This document shows positions 2,124 to 8,651 of a DNA stretch of 64,000 nucleotides, piece by piece (the first letter of the stretch is position 1; every line of letters starts with the position of its first letter). The notes under the pieces were generated by a model. It worked only from the letters and a program-made list of their open reading frames with translations, was not told the origin of the DNA and made no database searches. Where the stretch lies: the sequence record ON529860.1. One strand, written 5' to 3'. A program made the position numbers and the translations under genes.

Positions 2124-3011
2124 TTACAAAGTCACGATCAGGCGGGGATTGAAGTTCGGGTTCAGTTCATGCCCGACATAGCCGCGAGGATTGCAGATCA
2201 CGCGGGTCTCGCCGATCTGGTAGTCGCTGCTGTCATGCATGTGACCATGCGCCCACAAGGCGGGCTCCCACTCCAAAATCAGCGGCTCCAGCCGCGACGC
2301 ATAGGCGGGGTTCAGCGGCGATCCCCGATAACGAGGATGGCTCGACTGCTCCGACGGCGCATGGTGGGAGATCACCACGGTCGGGCCGTCATGAGGAACC
2401 CGTAGCGTTTCCGTCAGGAAGAAGCGGCTTTCCAGATGAAGGCGCCGCGTGTCGTCCGCCGTCAGGCGCTGCTGCTGCTTCAGTTCGATCTGCCGATAGT
2501 CGTTCATGTCCGACTGGGCGTGCCGGATCGACAAGGGCCAGGTCCCATAGAGGTCGAAATCGGTCCACAGGGTGGCGCCGAGGAAACGCACGTCGCCAAC
2601 ATGGACCTGCTCGTTATCCATGACGAAGACGCGGGCGGGCGCCAGTTCGTCAGCCTTGGCCTTCATCTTCTCGATGTGGCGGTGGTAGCGCCGCTTGCCG
2701 TAGAACTCGTGATTGCCCGGAACATAGAGGCAGGGGACGTCAGGGAAATGTCGCGCCAGCCAGATCACGCCGACGACGCCCGTCGCCAGGTCGCCGGCGG
2801 CGATGACCACGTCGATCTCGTCAGCCGAGGGCGCCGTCCAGGTGCGACGGTCCATGCCGCCGAACTCCAGATGGAGGTCCGACAGGATCAGGGCGCGCAA
2901 CGGCCGCCGTCCGGGCGTCCGCCGCGCCAGGCCGGCTTCGATGTCAGCCTGCATGTCGGCCGCAGCCGCCACAGTGAACTCCATCTCAGCCTTGCTCCAC
3001 TTGGTCTCCAT
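2124..3011 (-). CDS. calcineurin-like metallophosphoesterase
   Basis: SDLHLE, AGD, GNHE, SHH and HGHMH motifs. Confidence 0.92.
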   Translation of the reverse strand: METKWSKAEMEFTVAAAADMQADIEAGLARRTPGRRPLRALILSDLHLEFGGMDRRTWTAPSADEIDVVIAAGDLATGVVGVIWLARHFPDVPCLYVPGNHEFYGKRRYHRHIEKMKAKADELAPARVFVMDNEQVHVGDVRFLGATLWTDFDLYGTWPLSIRHAQSDMNDYRQIELKQQQRLTADDTRRLHLESRFFLTETLRVPHDGPTVVISHHAPSEQSSHPRYRGSPLNPAYASRLEPLILEWEPALWAHGHMHDSSDYQIGETRVICNPRGYVGHELNPNFNPRLIVTL

Positions 3012-3031
3012 CGTGGAGCATCCTTGAAATC

Positions 3032-3150
3032 TGGAGCGGGTGGACAGACTCGAACTGCCGCCTCCGGGTTAGCCACCCGGCGCTCCTGGGTCCACGCGAA
3101 CCCCCGACGATGATTCGCGTGATCATCGTCGGCCCTAGAGCCTCACCCGC
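3032..3150 (-). ncRNA. 119-nt tRNA-like RNA with a two-hairpin insertion in the D-loop
   Basis: GCGGGTG/CACCCGC acceptor stem, T73-CCA, GCTC/GAGC D-stem, CCGGG/CCCGG stem with TGGCTAA loop, GGCAG-TTCGAGT-CTGTC T-arm. Confidence 0.75.
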
Positions 3151-3353
3151 ATAAGTTGGCAGGAGTTTTCAGATATGGCGAACCATACCCAGGGCGACCC
3201 TCCTGCCAGGAACCCCCGTCTCGGTTTCTTTCACTGGCCCCGACACGAGCACCTGTCAAAGCCTATCTAGCCGCCAGGCTTGCGGAACGTCACGGGCGAT
3301 TAGGCGCCTCGGGATGAACAGCGTCGCGGACGGCGTAGCATCGGCTTGCCGTG

Positions 3354-3383
3354 ATTACTGGCAGACGGCGCCGGTGGTGTCAA
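3354..3383 (-). promoter_or_regulatory. sigma70-like promoter
   Basis: TTGACA-N17/18-(C)AGTAAT directly downstream of a terminator. Confidence 0.55.
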
Positions 3384-3388
3384 CAATG

Positions 3389-3420
3389 AAAAACGCCCCG
3401 ACCTTTCGATCGGGGCGTTC
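3389..3420 (-). terminator. intrinsic terminator
   Basis: AACGCCCCGA/TCGGGGCGTT stem followed by a U-tract on the minus strand. Confidence 0.85.
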
Positions 3421-3421
3421 T

Positions 3422-3733
3422 TCAGAGGTTCGCCATCCACTGCTTGCGGCAGCGCGTGTGATCCTTCCAGGACTTGCCGCCGGGGCGCGACGCCATGAGG
3501 TCGTCGTAGGACGACGGAAGGACCATGCGTCGGCCACGGGCGCGGTAGAGGCGATCGTGGGCTTCGCCGATGTTGCGCCGCCGCTCCTGCATGGTGCGGG
3601 GGCAGCGGTGCATGTAGCGCCAGCGGTGGCGGAAGCGACGGCAGCGGTAGGGCTCGCCGGGCTCCAGGTAGAGGACGCGCCAGCCCACGAAGTAGAAGCC
3701 GGAGTGGGTGACGCGTTCGAATTGGGGCTTCAT
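3422..3733 (-). CDS. small Arg-rich basic protein
   Basis: GGAGG SD; RCPRTMQERR...LPSSYDD...SWKDH..KQW pattern; followed by a terminator. Confidence 0.75.
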   Translation of the reverse strand: MKPQFERVTHSGFYFVGWRVLYLEPGEPYRCRRFRHRWRYMHRCPRTMQERRRNIGEAHDRLYRARGRRMVLPSSYDDLMASRPGGKSWKDHTRCRKQWMANL

Positions 3734-3833
3734 GTCAGCCTCCTGCTAGGTTGAGTACCTAGCGGGTGCTGTATTCCAGGTAGAATTTGATCATGAGGTC
3801 ATCCTAGCCCAAGCGGGGCTGTTCGTCTAGGAA

Positions 3834-3922
3834 TGGCGGATGGGGCAGGGATCGAACCCGCGTAACCCTCTCGGGTGTCGACCGCTTAGCAAGCGGCTGC
3901 CTTACCTCTCGGCCACCCATCC
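3834..3922 (-). tRNA. tRNA-Ser(GCT)
   Basis: Cloverleaf, long variable arm, G73, encoded CCA. Confidence 0.95.
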
Positions 3923-3929
3923 GGGGTGT

Positions 3930-4014
3930 TGGCGGTGCGCCAGGGAATCGAACCCTCAACCTTGCGGTCGGCGACGGTTTTCAAGGCCGCTTGTCCCCAT
4001 GGACGCTGCGCACC
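3930..4014 (-). tRNA. tRNA-Ser(TGA)
   Basis: CT-TGA-AA loop, long variable arm, encoded CCA. Confidence 0.88.
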
Positions 4015-4019
4015 GAAGG

Positions 4020-4111
4020 TGGCGGACGGCACGCGATTCGAACGCGTGGGACCCCAGGGGGTCCGCCTGCCTTCCAAGCAGGTGCCTTAAGCCGGGCTCA
4101 GCCAGCCGTCC
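4020..4111 (-). tRNA. tRNA-Ser(GGA)
   Basis: CCTGC-TTGGAAG-GCAGG arm, long variable arm, CCA. Confidence 0.93.
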
Positions 4112-4116
4112 GGTGT

Positions 4117-4334
4117 TGGTGGAGGCGAGGGGATTCGAACCCCCGTAGACGCCGAACCCTCGCATTACCGAGGGCCGATCTCAGGTTTAGAACGCGTGTG
4201 CCGCCCTGACCATCTTCCGCAGGCCAGGGGGTCTATCGTAACGACCCCGTCGATCGGTTGCCTCTGCGTCCCGGATTTACCCGGACCGTTGTTCTGTTCC
4301 ACGGTGCTCATGCCGAAACCCGAGCGACGCCCCC
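4117..4334 (-). ncRNA. compact one-piece tmRNA-like RNA (218 nt)
   Basis: 5' GGGGGCG pairs with 3' CGCCTCC-A-CCA giving G3.U70 and A73; GGTTTCG D-loop analogue; GGGGG-TTCGAAT-CCCCT T-arm; ~140-nt multi-hairpin interior in place of an anticodon arm. Confidence 0.7.
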
Positions 4335-4343
4335 GTGAAGAAA

Positions 4344-4431
4344 TGGAGGATGGTGTGGGATTCGAACCCACGGAACCTTGCGGTCCACCGGTTTTCGAAA
4401 CCGGCGCGATCGGCCTCTCCGCCAACCATCC
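4344..4431 (-). tRNA. tRNA-Ser(CGA)
   Basis: CCGGT-TTCGAAA-ACCGG arm, long variable arm; U73. Confidence 0.9.
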
Positions 4432-4438
4432 AGAACAG

Positions 4439-4627
4439 TCAGGCCGAGGCCGGACTGTAGTTGTCGATGTCGTCGACCCGGATCGCCGTGCCCGCCGCAA
4501 TCTGGCGGTCCGCGCTCAACAGTTCGGCGACCAGGTCGTCGGCCGTGACGGCGGCGCCGGAGGTGGCGAACTTCACGTTCACCAGGCGGCCGTCAGCGAA
4601 CATCTCGTCGATCGCGGCGCGATCCAT
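4439..4627 (-). CDS. hypothetical protein (62 aa)
   Basis: MDRAAIDEMF start with an AAGG SD, lying between tRNA genes. Confidence 0.6.
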   Translation of the reverse strand: MDRAAIDEMFADGRLVNVKFATSGAAVTADDLVAELLSADRQIAAGTAIRVDDIDNYSPASA

Positions 4628-4660
4628 GATAGACCTTTCTGCCGGCCTCGCCGGCGGTGA

Positions 4661-4731
4661 TGGTGGAGACAGTGGGGCTCGAACCCACCAAGGCGTCCTT
4701 GCAAAGGATGCCTGCGCCCTGCGCTGTCCCC
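4661..4731 (-). tRNA. tRNA-Ala(TGC), short D-arm
   Basis: G3.U70, A73, TT-TGC-AA loop, 71 nt. Confidence 0.85.
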
Positions 4732-4768
4732 GTAGGGGTTGAGTGTCAGCCATGCCGACAATCAGTGT

Positions 4769-4844
4769 TGGTCCTGGCACTCAGATTCGAACTGAGCCAT
4801 CGTGCTCCACAAACACGCGCCTCCACCGCAGAGGCTTTACCAGG
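4769..4844 (-). tRNA. tRNA-His(GTG), alphaproteobacterial type
   Basis: TT-GTG-GA loop; A73 and no genomic G-1. Confidence 0.9.
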
Positions 4845-4846
4845 GT

Positions 4847-4934
4847 TGGTCGCGACGACAGGGATCGAACCTGCCCGGCCTTTCGGCCACTACCACCTCA
4901 AGGTAGCGCGTCTACCAGACTCCGCCACGTCGCG
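4847..4934 (-). tRNA. tRNA-Leu(GAG)
   Basis: CTACC-TTGAGGT-GGTAG arm, long variable arm. Confidence 0.93.
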
Positions 4935-4943
4935 ATCGAAAGT

Positions 4944-5029
4944 TGGTGCCCGTCCCCGGACTCGAACCGGGACGCCGCGAGGGCCACGTCTTTTGAGGAC
5001 GCTGCGTCTACCTTTCCGTCCAGACGGGC
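4944..5029 (-). tRNA. tRNA-Leu(CAA)
   Basis: CT-CAA-AA loop, long variable arm. Confidence 0.93.
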
Positions 5030-5039
5030 AGTTGAAAAA

Positions 5040-5126
5040 TGGTGCGGGCGAGAGGATTCGAACCTCCCCGGCACAAAGGCCACGAGTACCTGAGACTCGC
5101 GCGGCTACCAACTTCGCCACGCCCGC
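5040..5126 (-). tRNA. tRNA-Leu(CAG)
   Basis: CGAGT-CTCAGGT-ACTCG arm. Confidence 0.93.
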
Positions 5127-5130
5127 ATTT

Positions 5131-5212
5131 TGGAGAACCCTGGTGGAGTCGAACCACTTGCGCCTGGATTAAAAGCCCAATCCCGGCCACCCGGATTTAA
5201 CGCTCAAGGTCC
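5131..5212 (-). tRNA. atypical tRNA-Lys(TTT)
   Basis: CT-TTT-AA loop and T-arm present; ~10-nt linker before the D-hairpin; U73. Confidence 0.65.
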
Positions 5213-5225
5213 CCTAAAGTTATGT

Positions 5226-5316
5226 TGGTGAACGTGGTCGGACTCGCACCGACGATGAAGGTTGTAACCTAACGGGATTAAGAGCCCCGGCCTCTCGCTA
5301 CTGAGGTGACACGTCC
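5226..5316 (-). tRNA. atypical tRNA-Lys(CTT) with long variable arm
   Basis: CGGGG-CTCTTAA-TCCCG arm; AGGTT/AACCT variable hairpin; TGCGAGT T-loop. Confidence 0.75.
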
Positions 5317-5352
5317 AAAACTGTTGTTCTTCTCCTGAAGACTTGATATGGA

Positions 5353-5423
5353 TGGAGCCGGCGGACGGTGTCGAACCGTCCCATGTCCACTACGAAAGGT
5401 CAGCCCTGCCACCAGGCGCCGGC
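5353..5423 (-). tRNA. degenerate tRNA, isotype uncertain (Arg-TCG or Glu-TTC)
   Basis: Perfect acceptor stem and T-arm with CCA, but the anticodon stem barely pairs. Confidence 0.5.
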
Positions 5424-5429
5424 GTTGTT

Positions 5430-5500
5430 TGGTGCCAAGGGAGGGAGTCAAACCCTCGCTGAACCCATACCAAGGGCTCGACCGATCACCCGGCCTTGGC
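5430..5500 (-). tRNA. tRNA-Thr(GGT), short D-arm
   Basis: AGCCC-TTGGTAT-GGGTT arm, 71 nt. Confidence 0.85.
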
Positions 5501-5508
5501 GTTGATGT

Positions 5509-5583
5509 TGGTCGGAACACCAGGACTCGAACCTGGGACCCCTAGCTTCCCGAGCCAGTGCGCTACCGCTGCGCTACATTCCG
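5509..5583 (-). tRNA. tRNA-Pro(GGG)
   Basis: C1-G72, loop TC-GGG-AA (non-canonical C33). Confidence 0.85.
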
Positions 5584-5592
5584 AGTTGATGA

Positions 5593-5669
5593 TGGTCGGC
5601 GAGGGAGGATTCGAACCTCCGATCCCTCCGACCCGAACGGAGTGACTTACCAGACTTGCCCACACGCCG
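5593..5669 (-). tRNA. tRNA-Pro(CGG)
   Basis: CTCCG-TTCGGGT-CGGAG arm. Confidence 0.93.
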
Positions 5670-5678
5670 ATGGAAACG

Positions 5679-5713
5679 AAAAAAAGGCCCCGGAGGCTTT
5701 GCGCCTGGGGCCT
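5679..5713 (-). terminator. intrinsic terminator (probably conditional, part of an attenuator) upstream of the main tRNA block
   Basis: AGGCCCCAGGCGCAAAGCCTCCGGGGCC-TTTTTTT. Confidence 0.85.
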
Positions 5714-5785
5714 GAAACATCTGCTGTTTTGGGGTTCAGCAGGTGATCGGCCCCTTAGGGCGCCTCACCTGCTTGGTGCCTGTTG

Positions 5786-5917
5786 TTACAGGAAACCTTC
5801 CAGGGAGACGCCACCGGTGGTGGGGGACTTCGTCGACAGTTTCGGCGCATGCGCGAGCGTCGACAGCGCCGTGGCGGCGGTCGAAAGCGGGCTCAGCTTG
5901 TGCGACAAGGTGGTCAC
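5786..5917 (-). CDS. putative 43-aa leader peptide of the tRNA array
   Basis: GTG ACC ACC...TTC CTG TAA between a promoter and a terminator; residues 2-34 use only T/L/S/H/K/P/A. Confidence 0.6.
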   Translation of the reverse strand: MTTLSHKLSPLSTAATALSTLAHAPKLSTKSPTTGGVSLEGFL

Positions 5918-5969
5918 GATGAAGGTCCAGTCCGAAGAAGGAGCGCAAGTGCGCTGTGATGAAGTCTGA

Positions 5970-5998
5970 TCTCTACAGGAAGCTTGAGCGTATGTCAA
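5970..5998 (-). promoter_or_regulatory. sigma70-like promoter
   Basis: TTGACA-N17-TAGAGA. Confidence 0.65.
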
Positions 5999-6020
5999 GA
6001 ACTTCCGAAGAAAAAGTTGG

Positions 6021-6166
6021 GAGAGGGGCCAGATTGGTTACTGACATACCCGGCTTCGACCGATGCCCTAGCCATTCCATCCTACCGGTCCAGTTGTATA
6101 CTCCCAGCGCGTCGCCGCGCCGGCCGTCGGACTTTCAGTTGGATGCGCTTGTTGAGCGACCCTCTC
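6021..6166 (-). ncRNA. candidate 146-nt structured small RNA
   Basis: Ends pair (GAGAGG-GTC with GGC-C-CCTCTC); internal GCGA-loop hairpin; 5' end matches the predicted TSS of TTGACG-N17-CACAAG at 6174-6202; U-tract follows. Confidence 0.5.
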
Positions 6167-6303
6167 GAAACGTCTTGTGCCAGGATCAACGGCAGACGTC
6201 AACAGGAAAATGCACGCGCGCGGCCGAGGGGGAGCGGAAGACCGCGCGCGTGCCGGCAGACCGTCGGGGGACGGGGCCTGGGGTCGTCGGGGGACGGGGA
6301 GGG

Positions 6304-6540
6304 TCAGCCGGCGCGGCGCTTGAGCGTCTCGTGCAGCGGCGGATAGGGGACCGGGGCGTAGATCACCTCGACCAGGCGAGGGCGGCGGCCGGTGCGGATT
6401 TTGGCAGGCAGGGGCACGTTGCGGCGCCGCAGTTCGGCGGCGGCGGCGGCGCTCGCCAGGGAGCCCGACAGGTAGACGCCGATCAGTTCGGCGACCGTCA
6501 GGGTCATCATGCGCTGGGCGCGGGTGGTGTTGTGAGCCAC
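6304..6540 (-). CDS. hypothetical protein
   Basis: GGAGA SD and GTG start. Confidence 0.6.
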   Translation of the reverse strand: MAHNTTRAQRMMTLTVAELIGVYLSGSLASAAAAAELRRRNVPLPAKIRTGRRPRLVEVIYAPVPYPPLHETLKRRAG

Positions 6541-6639
6541 GAGGGTCTCTCCATCTGGATGTGATCCAGGCGAGAGACACGGGCGCGCGCTAGGCGGCCG
6601 CGAAGGGTCTCCGTCCTGGAAGTTACCAGATGCGAGAGA

Positions 6640-6831
6640 TTAGTCGGAGGGCTTGGCCCCGAAGACCGAGGCGATCGCCGTCAAAGCCTTCTTGACCCGG
6701 TTGGGTCGTTGGGTCAGCGCCGAGGCGCAGACCTTCTTGATTTCGTCAAGGGTGAGCGAGGCCGGGTCACGCAGGCCGCGCGCGGCGATCGAGCCGACGC
6801 TGGCGGAGGTGACTTCGGTGGTGGTGCTCAT
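6640..6831 (-). CDS. hypothetical protein (63 aa)
   Basis: ORF immediately after tRNA-Asp; LTLDEIKKVCASALTQRP. Confidence 0.7.
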   Translation of the reverse strand: MSTTTEVTSASVGSIAARGLRDPASLTLDEIKKVCASALTQRPNRVKKALTAIASVFGAKPSD

Positions 6832-6841
6832 GGAAAACCTC

Positions 6842-6916
6842 TGGCGAGTCCAAGGGGAGTTGAACCCCTCTCTCCACCGTGACAGGGTGGTGTCCTAACC
6901 GATAGACGATGGACCC
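6842..6916 (-). tRNA. tRNA-Asp(GTC)
   Basis: CCACC-CTGTCAC-GGTGG arm, G73. Confidence 0.95.
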
Positions 6917-6947
6917 GTATCAGAGGGTCGATCCGCAGGAAGATGCT

Positions 6948-7025
6948 TGGAAGGGCGCCGGAGACTCGAACTCCGCTCACTTGGTTGAAAGCCAAGTATC
7001 CTGCAAACCGCTAGACGAGCGCCCC
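6948..7025 (-). tRNA. tRNA-Glu(TTC)
   Basis: CTTGG-CTTTCAA-CCAAG arm; U73. Confidence 0.9.
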
Positions 7026-7059
7026 ATAAAGCACAGGGCGTCGAACACGAGAGCCGCGA

Positions 7060-7125
7060 TTAGGCGGCGGTCGTATCTCGGCCCTGGAAGGCCTCTCGTT
7101 CGTAGCTGGTCAGACGGTAGGTCAT
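7060..7125 (-). CDS. putative leaderless 21-aa peptide MTYRLTSYEREAFQGRDTTAA
   Basis: ATG lies at the predicted +1 of the promoter at 7132-7160. Confidence 0.4.
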   Translation of the reverse strand: MTYRLTSYEREAFQGRDTTAA

Positions 7126-7131
7126 TTGTCG

Positions 7132-7160
7132 CTTGTATCAGAACTGTCGGTGGGTGTCAA
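7132..7160 (-). promoter_or_regulatory. sigma70-like promoter
   Basis: TTGACA-N17-TACAAG. Confidence 0.7.
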
Positions 7161-7336
7161 GAAGGACGGCGAATCTTTTTGGACCTTGCATGGGGTCGGT
7201 CTTCCTCGGCCTCAGGCTCGGCCGCGTCCCAGGCCATCCACAGGGCCGCGAGAAAAGCAGGCGGACCCATCAAGTCTTCCAACCGCTTCAAGGCCCGGTC
7301 GTTGGCCGCCAGGAAGGCGTCGCCGTATTCAAGCAT
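7157..7336 (-). CDS. hypothetical protein (59 aa, below the track cutoff)
   Basis: GAGG SD; MLEYGDAFLAANDRALKRLEDL...IRRPS. Confidence 0.6.
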   Translation of the reverse strand: MLEYGDAFLAANDRALKRLEDLMGPPAFLAALWMAWDAAEPEAEEDRPHARSKKIRRPS

Positions 7337-7616
7337 CGTGACCTCGGGAGATTTCAGGGGGCCGGCTTTGGCGCGCGGCGTTTAACCGCCGGCGCCTAGA
7401 CGGAGGCAGCGTGCCAGCCCTGCTCGACTGGCCCAGCCCCCTCAAGGCGATGAGTGCCAGGAAAGGCGGCAATGGTCAAGGGGAAATGCGGTGGGTACAG
7501 CTTCAACCGGCCTTGCGGCCTGCGGGTCTTTCGGGCGTCCTGCCCACCGCGCCTACTACGACGCCTTTTTCGGCCCCGGCGCGCCGGAGAGTAAAAATCG
7601 ACGGGTGACCGCTACC

Positions 7617-7772
7617 GGCCTCGCCTGCTGGCCCGTCCCAGCGCCTGACCTTCTCTTCGCGACGCCCTTGTGGGCGTTATGGCCTTCCCGTCCGAAGACA
7701 GACGCCGTGAAGGGTCAGCGGGACCGCATGATCGTCAGCCGCACGGCCAGCGCGGCGAGCGGATCAGAGGCC
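7617..7772 (-). ncRNA. candidate ~156-nt nested-stem RNA
   Basis: Nested pairs CTCGCC/GGCGAG, GCTGGCC/GGCCAGC, GTCCC/GGGAC, CTGACC/GGTCAG; apical cUUCGg hairpin. Confidence 0.45.
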
Positions 7773-7786
7773 TGTCCCGGAAAGAA

Positions 7787-7860
7787 TGGAGCGACTGGTC
7801 GGAATCGAACCGACGTCCCCAGGGTGGAAACCTAGTGCTAAGCCTCTCAGCTACAGCCGC
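7787..7860 (-). tRNA. tRNA-Gly(TCC)
   Basis: TT-TCC-AC loop, U73. Confidence 0.93.
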
Positions 7861-7874
7861 AGTATAAAAGAGGG

Positions 7875-7950
7875 TGGAGCGACTCTCGGGACTCGAACCC
7901 GACCCTGCGCGTTGGCAACGCGTTGTACCCACCCATAATACGTGAGTCGC
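7875..7950 (-). tRNA. tRNA-Gly(GCC)
   Basis: TT-GCC-AA loop, U73. Confidence 0.92.
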
Positions 7951-7963
7951 AGTGGTTAATAAA

Positions 7964-8045
7964 TGGCACGGGTGGAGGGATTCGAACCCCCGACGTATGC
8001 TGGTTTTGGAGACCAGTGCCTTGAGCCAGACTTGGCGACACCCGT
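7964..8045 (-). tRNA. tRNA-Trp(CCA)
   Basis: CTGGT-CTCCAAA-ACCAG arm, G73. Confidence 0.92.
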
Positions 8046-8058
8046 GTAAACTTGAAAG

Positions 8059-8583
8059 CTACTTATAACGCTCTTGAATGAACTTGACAACCCGCTGCGG
8101 CGTACTTTCGTCGGCGGTGGTGCGAAAATCGATCCGATCCCCCAGCAGGGCCAGCAGCTTCTGATCCACCTCCAGGGCTTCCGCCTCGTTGTGGTGGCGG
8201 CCGTAGGTCTGATAGGCGGACGCCGGGCGATCGAGCCAGACGTTGACGTTCTCGTAGGAATCGAAAAGGTCGAAGACCTCCTGATGGAACTCCGGCTGGG
8301 CGTAGTCGCCCTGGCCGTAGACGCAGCCCAACAGCAGGGGACTGTCGGTCAAAATCCAATCGACGTGACCGAGGAACCGTTTCAGCCGGGACGCCTGTTT
8401 CCAGGTGACGCGGCGCTGATCGGCCAAGGTCGCCCAGTCCTGACTGACGGAGCGCTCGGTGGCGTACTCCTCGACCTGGGCGGCGCGGTATCCGCCGATC
8501 TTCAGGTGAAAGAAGGTCCCGGCCTTGACCGTCGACTTACCGCCGCACGGGCCAGACCAGAAGTTCAGGACACGCGTCGTCAT
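8059..8583 (-). CDS. NadR/Ttd14-like P-loop (AAA_28) ATPase/kinase
   Basis: SGPCGGKST Walker A variant, EEYATE, ILTDSPLLL, GR...E.EA...D. Confidence 0.8.
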   Translation of the reverse strand: MTTRVLNFWSGPCGGKSTVKAGTFFHLKIGGYRAAQVEEYATERSVSQDWATLADQRRVTWKQASRLKRFLGHVDWILTDSPLLLGCVYGQGDYAQPEFHQEVFDLFDSYENVNVWLDRPASAYQTYGRHHNEAEALEVDQKLLALLGDRIDFRTTADESTPQRVVKFIQERYK

Positions 8584-8651
8584 GCAGCAAACGGACTTTC
8601 AACCGGCTGAAGGGATTCAGATTGTGGGGGTGGCGCATTGCGCCGGCAGGT

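Follow-up and report, generated by a model that had tools for sequence, protein, structure and literature searches.

In the attenuators of amino-acid operons a promoter is followed by a short open reading frame (ORF) with many regulatory codons, a helix that acts as pause signal or anti-antiterminator, an antiterminator resembling the 3' arm of the terminator, and the terminator itself, which stands just before the biosynthetic genes; stalling of the ribosome leads to read-through. Such leaders sense one to three amino acids; examples are hisL, leuL, pheL and trpL, thrL, which responds to Thr and Ile, and ilvL and ivbL, which respond to Leu, Val and Ile. The pheM leader of E. coli pheST controls a gene of the translation apparatus by decoding of matching codons, and T-box riboswitches choose between terminator and antiterminator according to the status of a transfer RNA (tRNA). 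To our knowledge bacterial tRNA genes are regulated at their promoters (growth-rate and stringent control) rather than by attenuation, and the tRNA clusters of phages are mostly regarded as constitutive cargo. Here we analyzed a window of 64,000 nucleotides (nt), the first 64 kilobases (kb) of the 357-kb genome of Brevundimonas phage vB_BpoS-Papperlapapp (ON529860.1, matched with 100% identity), in which an unannotated 43-codon ORF and a terminator precede a large tRNA array. We consider it likely that this unit, referred to as leader 1, is a ribosome-mediated (leader-peptide) transcription attenuator gating the array, which we call array 1. Probably, the phage makes the tRNAs of the array only when decoding of their codons slows.

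Leader 1 would work like the attenuators of amino-acid operons and stands outside that group, since the genes behind it are tRNAs. The succession of elements is the same, with a putative promoter and with stalling predicted to give read-through, but the unit is phage-encoded, has tRNA genes and one 62-codon coding sequence (CDS) as its presumed targets instead of biosynthetic enzymes, and would sense seven amino acids and 14 anticodons. A second leader in the same phage would sense a disjoint set, and we know of no attenuator that is more multivalent. No description of tRNA genes under leader-peptide control was found in full-text literature searches or in the phiCbK genome paper. Closest to leader 1 in function are the multivalent thr and ilv leaders and the pheM leader. 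The pheM leader differs in responding to a single amino acid, in its protein-coding target (an aminoacyl-tRNA synthetase) and in being chromosomal. With T-boxes the likeness is a functional analogy, because these bind uncharged tRNA directly and need no translation; a T-box riboswitch was rejected for this locus, as no Rfam T-box match was found in 2800–8600 at E ≤ 1 or in the whole window at gathering score. Ribosome-dependent attenuation is known from the class to which the hosts of these phages belong, the alphaproteobacteria, an example being trpL/rnTrpL of Sinorhizobium meliloti (PMC6614838, PMC7298713). That attenuator differs in sensing Trp only, in its biosynthetic operon target and in the action of the released RNA and peptide in trans.

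Papperlapapp is a phiCbK-like jumbo phage of the Dolichocephalovirinae. Its tRNA island, including leader 1, is located on the minus strand and is syntenic with seven other Brevundimonas phages and with the Caulobacter phiCbK, Colossus and Bertely groups. Leader ORF 1 (5786–5917, minus strand) begins with GTG at 5917 and ends with TAA at 5788–5786, 72 nt before a hairpin followed by a U7 run. From the U-run to the start of tRNA-Pro at 5669 there are 9 nt, which leaves no room for another promoter. Array 1 (3834–5669, minus strand), the presumed target of leader 1, comprises 15 tRNA genes in the order Pro(CGG), Pro(GGG), Thr-like(GGT), Thr-like(CGT), Lys(CTT), Lys(TTT), Leu(CAG), Leu(CAA), Leu(GAG), His and Ala(TGC), followed by the 62-codon annotated CDS, Ser(CGA), a transfer-messenger RNA (tmRNA)-like element, Ser(GGA), a Ser/Sec-like gene and Ser(GCT). 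Altogether two Pro, two Thr, two Lys, three Leu, one His, one Ala and three to four Ser genes represent 14 anticodons. ARAGORN reported only ten tRNAs downstream of leader 1 (Pro twice, Leu three times, His, Ala, Ser three times). Alignment with relatives showed that the gap in these calls at 5127–5508 is occupied by a pair of Thr-like genes of 71 nt each (loops GGT and CGT) and by two long Lys genes (CTT and TTT), so that the Thr and Lys tRNAs listed in an earlier note on this DNA, which had been made from the sequence alone, are present although ARAGORN is silent there.

The composition of leader ORF 1 mirrors the array. Sensor codons 2–34 (5816–5914, minus strand) specify Pro, Thr, Lys, Leu, His, Ala and Ser only, exactly the isotypes of array 1. 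This run of 33 residues, pointed out in the earlier note, is the longest of its kind in the six-frame translation of the window, the runner-up reaching 22. The same seven isotypes account for 44% of the residues in phage gene proxies, where Gly contributes 14% and Arg 5%. At the level of codons the agreement goes beyond the match to most downstream anticodons that had been claimed: leader ORF 1 has a cognate codon for 14/14 array-1 anticodons, and 29 of the 31 codons 2–32 are cognate, both exceptions being GCC. A chance match was not reproduced with random 42-codon windows of phage genes, none of which (0/200,000) sampled all 14 anticodons; the highest cognate fractions reached 0.62–0.68. In a cross-control the residues of leader 1 matched array-1 isotypes in 31/31 cases and those of a second array, array 2, in 0/31.

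To assess conservation we examined 13 phiCbK-like lineages, namely Brevundimonas and Caulobacter phages and four metagenomic contigs (profile search). Homologues of leader ORF 1 were found at the same position in the phages Bambus, Gurke, Kikimora, Domovoi, Kabachok, Marchewka and Bajun and, among the Caulobacter phages, in phiCbK/S2L (gp083 / S2L_086), Colossus, CcrPW and CcrBL9 (gp149); in Bajun, phiCbK, S2L and CcrBL9 they carry a hypothetical-protein annotation. The ORF has 39–45 codons, its GTG/ATG start and the position of its stop are conserved in the 13 lineages, and the distance from the stop codon to tRNA-Pro is 107–119 nt in all of them. All 14 alignment gaps of Brevundimonas-type sequences relative to the Papperlapapp copy are exactly 3 nt long. 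Indels in threes together with the conserved start and stop position are evolutionary evidence suggesting that leader ORF 1 is translated. Substitutions fall on all three codon positions. The 30 variable sensor columns comprise 87 residue states, of which 79 belong to the seven isotypes, compared with 46% expected from single-base changes, and the overall fraction within the set is 286/297. By these figures, selection acts on the frame and composition of leader 1 and much less on residue identity. In the last ~8 codons amino acids vary freely and the hairpin around the stop codon is kept.

The arrays of the relatives follow the same plan. The order Pro-Thr-Lys-Leu-His-Ala-Ser is kept, and contig L018 has all seven isotypes according to ARAGORN. 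Seemingly missing isotypes (Thr, Lys and Ala in Bajun, Thr in Colossus) exist as non-canonical genes, and the phiCbK array also holds two Thr-like genes and Ala(TGC). All array anticodons are sampled by leader 1 in 8/8 lineages tabulated. In CcrBL9, where a tRNA-Trp ends array 1, the sensor part of the leader contains a Trp codon. The leader-1 profile proved too variable to serve as a search query. A metallophosphatase-anchored search of IMG/VR for more lineages returned one unrelated contig only, the profile of leader 2 recovered only known isolates from IMG/VR, and no further leaders were found in a scan of Joint Genome Institute metagenomes. In the distant CbK-like siphophage DSS3P8 of Roseobacter (L031 8585–8880), neither a leader ORF nor a terminator of this kind precedes the tRNA array. 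Judged from these sequences the leader system may be confined to the Dolichocephalovirinae.

An annotated CDS, PAPPERLAPAPP_00210 (5817–5969, plus strand), is antisense to leader ORF 1. It is annotated in two of eight related Brevundimonas phages and is probably a mis-call. As alternatives to the leader frame, both the +1 frame and this antisense CDS were considered; they are open, but neither their starts nor their sequences are conserved across lineages, and they were rejected.

We then considered the RNA. The intrinsic terminator (5679–5712, minus strand, as are all elements of this leader) consists of a stem-loop at 5712–5686 with −18.7 kcal/mol and U7 at 5685–5679; the homologous site of phiCbK is annotated as a rho-independent terminator. 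Upstream of it the antiterminator segment GCGCCCUAAGGGGCC (5749–5763) resembles the terminator 3' arm and is predicted to pair with the 5' arm (−17.4 kcal/mol, p=0.05 versus shuffles for Papperlapapp), GGGGCC at 5754–5749 being complementary to GGCCCC at 5712–5707. In the terminating conformation this segment would be sequestered by hairpin A, a stem of 9 base pairs formed by 5773–5765 with 5746–5738. Hairpin B (CUGCUG/CAGCAG, 5742–5737 with 5726–5721) is nested in the antiterminator helix; since it shares bases with the 3' arm of hairpin A, the two are mutually exclusive, as the earlier note had recognized. At the sequence level an ORF, matching codons, an intrinsic terminator and an exclusive antiterminator are thus all seen.

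All elements named in that note, the promoter-like site, the 43-codon ORF, hairpins A and B, the GGGGCC pairing and the U7 terminator, were found where it had placed them. Its structure was nevertheless incomplete, as two components had been missed. One is region 1 (GGCGUCUCCCU, codons 36–40, 5802–5812), which in the minimum-energy fold is a competing partner of hairpin A's 5' arm, with which it is predicted to pair if free of ribosomes. The other is hairpin S (CCUGU/ACAGG, 5779–5792), a predicted fold with the stop codon in its loop. Every lineage has a hairpin at the stop codon, and the stems of these hairpins occur in at least 8 different sequences, which represents covariation. Folding of the whole leader yields the antiterminated state, in which the 5' arm of hairpin A is paired to 5812–5802, and the 5' arm of the terminator to 5763–5749 around hairpin B. 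When folded from codon 39 on, the RNA adopts hairpin S, hairpin A and the terminator.

The effect of ribosome position was assessed by constrained folding, in which positions were blocked to mimic a ribosome and the mean terminator-stem probability was read out; this is an equilibrium model only. For Papperlapapp the probability was 0.42 for the free RNA, 0.41 with the ribosome on codons 8–28 and 0.98 with the ribosome at the stop codon. The corresponding values were 0.35, 0.37 and 0.87 for Gurke, 0.01, 0.03 and 1.00 for phiCbK, 0.10, 0.13 and 0.83 for Colossus, 0.40, 0.25 and 0.98 for L020, and 0.24, 0.11 and 1.00 for L021. Upon shuffling of the upstream part the terminator probability rose to ~0.9, and the low values of the free state were seldom reached. 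The expected switch was obtained in 10–11 of 13 lineages and was absent in CcrBL9 and Bajun. In phiCbK the same switch logic arises from unrelated sequences (GGAGCCGC vs GCGGCUCC). The equivalent of the antiterminator lies 17–25 nt past the stop codon and differs in sequence in Bajun and phiCbK, in each case fitting the phage's own terminator. RNAalifold applied to the Brevundimonas-type leader-1 alignment returned the antiterminator fold with little covariation, because these sequences are too similar. The folding model thus predicts that smooth translation leads to termination, and that stalling on the sensor codons or a lack of translation leads to read-through.

The proposed mechanism can be described as follows. 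Transcription would start at the promoter near 5998, and the sole way into the tRNA genes would lead through the terminator at 5712–5679. In the OFF state a ribosome that translates smoothly to codons 36–43 or to the stop codon would cover region 1 (5812–5802); the arms of hairpin A would then pair, the antiterminator segment would be held in its loop, the terminator would form and transcription would stop. In the ON state the ribosome would stall earlier, at any of ~30 sensor codons, which would allow region 1 to pair with the 5' arm of hairpin A, with hairpin S nested; 5763–5749 would join the terminator 5' arm in a helix enclosing hairpin B, and RNA polymerase would enter the tRNA genes. 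Unlike trp super-attenuation, leader 1 with its five competing segments is predicted to read through when untranslated. Since the sensor codons are those of the array tRNAs and every isoacceptor is present, the unit would report decoding capacity and feed back on tRNA supply. We infer here that leader 1 is translated, that its translation is coupled to RNA polymerase and that termination and read-through take place, and likewise what triggers the unit physiologically. The locus tags searched had no entry in the supplementary files of the paper on RNA sequencing of phiCbK infection.

A second leader precedes another sub-array. Leader ORF 2 (ON529860.1 356303–356395, L022 4804–4896, minus strand) lies ~6 kb downstream on the tRNA strand, across the record start and therefore outside the window. 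It has a TTGACA promoter-like site and a terminator of −26.9 kcal/mol (L022 ~4740–4770), followed by array 2 with Tyr, Val, Ile, Val, Gln, Asn, Arg and Arg genes, in the form Tyr-Val-Ile-Val-Gln-Asn-Arg(-Phe). By tblastn it was detected in all 41 matching Dolichocephalovirinae records, mostly unannotated. Its core, Y-R-(Q/N)-(N/F)-V-(Q/R)-(Q/N)-I-(Q/R)-V-V-R-(F/N)-x-R, consists of the isotypes of array 2, and in the cross-control 14/17 residues matched array 2 and 1/17 array 1 (two non-canonical Arg genes counted). Leader 2 retains wobble codons that are rare in phage genes, TAT (relative usage 0.32), CAA (0.22), ATT (0.14) and TTT (0.08); these rare, slowly read codons resemble the CUA codons of leuL.

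Codons 17–20 of leader 2 are a copy of the terminator 3' arm (9–11 of 11 positions). Across six lineages this copy pairs with the terminator 5' arm in 66/66 cells, compared with 17–37/66 in slid registers, and it shows compensatory changes at three positions, the very ones at which the terminator covaries. Changes that preserve the pairing convert an Arg codon to Leu in Colossus and an Ala codon to Thr in Bajun and CcrBL9. Together with an upstream hairpin (GUCCGG...CCGGGC), these segments make up a trp-like 1:2 / 2:3 / 3:4 layout, the textbook arrangement of amino-acid-operon attenuators. The case for a switch in leader 2 is made from covariation and a kinetic argument, because equilibrium folding mostly gives the terminator regardless of ribosome position.

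Directly after the leader-2 terminator, just before tRNA-Tyr, we also observed a mini-ORF of 5 codons whose Shine-Dalgarno sequence, AGGAG, is strong (L022 ~4690–4725, minus strand; Gurke L025 ~2330–2365; Colossus L023 ~2380–2410). Its peptide is Met-Thr-Gly-Gly-Asp in two phages and Met-Asn-Asn-Gly-Gly in Colossus.

Leader 3 (7060–7160, minus strand) consists of TTGACA at 7160–7155 and a 21-codon ORF at 7125–7060, located 34 nt before tRNA-Glu and tRNA-Asp. With 20–21 codons it is conserved in 7 lineages, in which the stop codon is 28–34 nt away from tRNA-Glu. The peptide contains Glu-x-Glu in 6/7 lineages (one Glu in CcrBL9) and Asp in 7/7. The isotype match is weak, the stop codon is placed in a hairpin loop and Papperlapapp shows no clear terminator.

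The attenuator reading of leader 1 is supported in several ways: in 13 lineages the ORF keeps its frame, and its composition is retained as the sequence drifts; equivalent two-state structures are predicted for lineages whose primary sequences are unrelated; and leaders 2 and 3 precede other sub-arrays, leader 2 repeating the codon sampling with clean covariation of the antiterminator. The core of what the earlier note had suggested, a leader that samples the tRNAs it controls and whose stalling causes read-through, is therefore supported by comparison and folding, its structural model being the part that fell short. Several observations weigh against this reading. The Shine-Dalgarno sequence of leader ORF 1 is weak, with only GGA at about −12, and Ala(UGC) is not a strict cognate of its two GCC codons. 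The phiCbK leader keeps three His codons, whereas its array has only a degenerate His-like remnant, so that leader composition tracks tRNA content across relatives, a comparison suggested in the note, less than completely. A strict scan for sigma-70 promoters and terminators flagged neither the promoter, owing to its weak −10, nor the terminator, owing to a 2-nt bulge in the stem, and therefore provides no independent confirmation. In CcrBL9 the terminator itself is doubtful, and those of Colossus and CcrPW are weak. Besides being absent in CcrBL9, the predicted switch has little strength in L018 and CcrPW, and for Bajun the antiterminator prevails even when the ribosome is at the stop codon. 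In single lineages the antiterminator is only marginally better than shuffles (p = 0.007–0.08), and in Colossus, CcrPW and CcrBL9 the difference is not significant. The preference of leader 2 for the terminator at equilibrium belongs here as well. Finally, some conservation of leader 1 is seen at the peptide level (LSHKLS, SLAHAP), and the peptide itself may have a role.

The last point leads to a different explanation, according to which the ORF encodes a small protein with its own function and is followed by its own terminator, the hairpin and U-run, while the tRNAs are transcribed by leaky read-through or from another promoter and the isotype match reflects coincidence or low-complexity bias. 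The conserved motifs and the hypothetical-protein annotation in four genomes would fit a small protein. We nevertheless regard this as quite improbable: residues permute freely inside one seven-letter set that equals the downstream isotypes, the C-terminal third changes amino acids and keeps an RNA hairpin, and the gap between U-run and tRNA-Pro is only 9 nt. Coincidence would moreover be needed twice, as leader 2 repeats the match with a disjoint residue set and exchanges Arg for Leu or Ala for Thr with terminator pairing kept. That the locus is instead a non-coding structured RNA, either a small RNA (sRNA) or a signal for tRNA-precursor processing, with the open frame as a by-product of GC-rich sequence, seems highly unlikely to us. 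Leader 1 does fold better than shuffled sequences (z = −3.65 and −4.55), and terminated attenuator RNAs can work in trans, as does rnTrpL of Sinorhizobium (PMC6614838). A non-coding RNA would not account for indels occurring only in threes, for the conserved start and stop, or for a composition conserved in one frame only, and region 5679–5998 matches no Rfam family even at E ≤ 1.

Within the attenuator reading the question is what signal is sensed. On balance we lean towards the view that each phiCbK-like tRNA sub-array with a leader is self-regulating, the leader peptide serving as a codon-by-codon test strip by which the phage would measure decoding capacity at isoacceptor resolution and replenish tRNAs in short supply, including those lost to host shut-off or anticodon nucleases. 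The same attenuator might respond to ordinary supply and demand and not to defence, sensing the total decoding capacity (host and phage tRNAs and their charging) for abundant phage codons, with tRNA output going up when late-gene translation or host shut-off depletes tRNAs and down when they are plentiful; we give this a chance slightly short of even. The sampled tRNAs read the commonest phage codons (CTG, TCG, CCG, ACC, AAG), and the codons covered by phiCbK tRNAs specify 58% of its encoded residues (Gill et al. 2012). All sub-arrays have leaders, beyond the isotypes known as nuclease targets, and the loci are without any link between leaders and defence genes. Supply-demand feedback fits as well as a defence trigger by depletion or cleavage of host tRNAs, the purpose proposed in the earlier note; the two do not exclude each other, our results are equally compatible with both, and the rare wobble codons of leader 2 would suit any sensitive sensor.

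Upstream of leader ORF 1 we read a −35-like hexamer TTGACA (5998–5993, minus strand) and, after a 17-nt spacer, a −10-like TAGAGA (5975–5970, minus strand). The −10 region motif CTGTAGAGATC (5968–5978, minus strand) is poor compared with the E. coli consensus, and its function as a promoter is putative. The TTGACA aligns across Papperlapapp- and Gurke-type Brevundimonas phages, and the hexamer is also present upstream of leaders 2 and 3. Motifs akin to the −10 of leader 1 (CTGTAGTAAAC, GTGTAGACATC, TGTGAGA...) follow the TTGACA of leaders 1 and 2 in other lineages. A further promoter-like site, TTGACG, is found upstream at 6197–6202 (minus strand), and between it and the leader promoter Papperlapapp has ~124 nt more than Domovoi and Kabachok (about 6010–6133). 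Bajun and S2L/phiCbK have a single TTGACR, which MAFFT placed with this upstream site. As the site aligns with the only TTGACR of Bajun and phiCbK, leader 1 of Papperlapapp may have tandem promoters.

If leader 1 acts as proposed, decoding would feed back directly on tRNA synthesis, which would be the first known translational feedback on transcription of tRNA genes and a new layer of the contest between phage and host over tRNAs. How large phages set the output of their tRNA arrays would then have an answer that lends itself to testing. With phiCbK and Caulobacter NA1000, a pair in standard laboratory use, it could be asked whether depletion of host tRNAs or defences that target tRNAs evoke a response of the phage tRNAs. 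Dozens of deposited genomes hold these conserved regulatory ORFs unannotated or mis-annotated, as in Papperlapapp, where an antisense ORF is annotated instead of leader 1.

Searching Rfam in the region at E ≤ 1 and in the whole window at gathering score gave only tRNAs and sub-threshold tRNA-like matches, and no T-box, riboswitch or sRNA family. GOLLD RNA had no match in the window at gathering score; a match was observed beside the tRNA island of CcrBL9 (L012 1217–1632, plus strand) with 119 bits, compared with a gathering score of 150, and E = 5.6e-31. The earlier note had listed a tmRNA-like RNA among the downstream genes. The element, at 4117–4248 (minus strand) between two Ser tRNAs of array 1, does match the Rfam tmRNA model (E = 3e-10), but with 32 bits it stays below the cut-off of 47. 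The match covers the ends of the model only and no tmRNA was called by ARAGORN; the element is also present in Gurke.

The non-canonical tRNA genes missed by ARAGORN are located at ~5353–5500, 5131–5316 and 3933–4015 in the window (minus strand) and at 3828–4020 and 4600–4690 in L022. They include the two 71-nt Thr-like genes, which have an aberrant D region, Lys genes of 87–91 nt with long variable arms, and, in array 2, long genes for Tyr and Arg. A Ser-like gene is scored as tRNA-Sec with 34.6 bits, under the cut-off. As such genes escape ARAGORN, published tRNA counts for these phages are too low.

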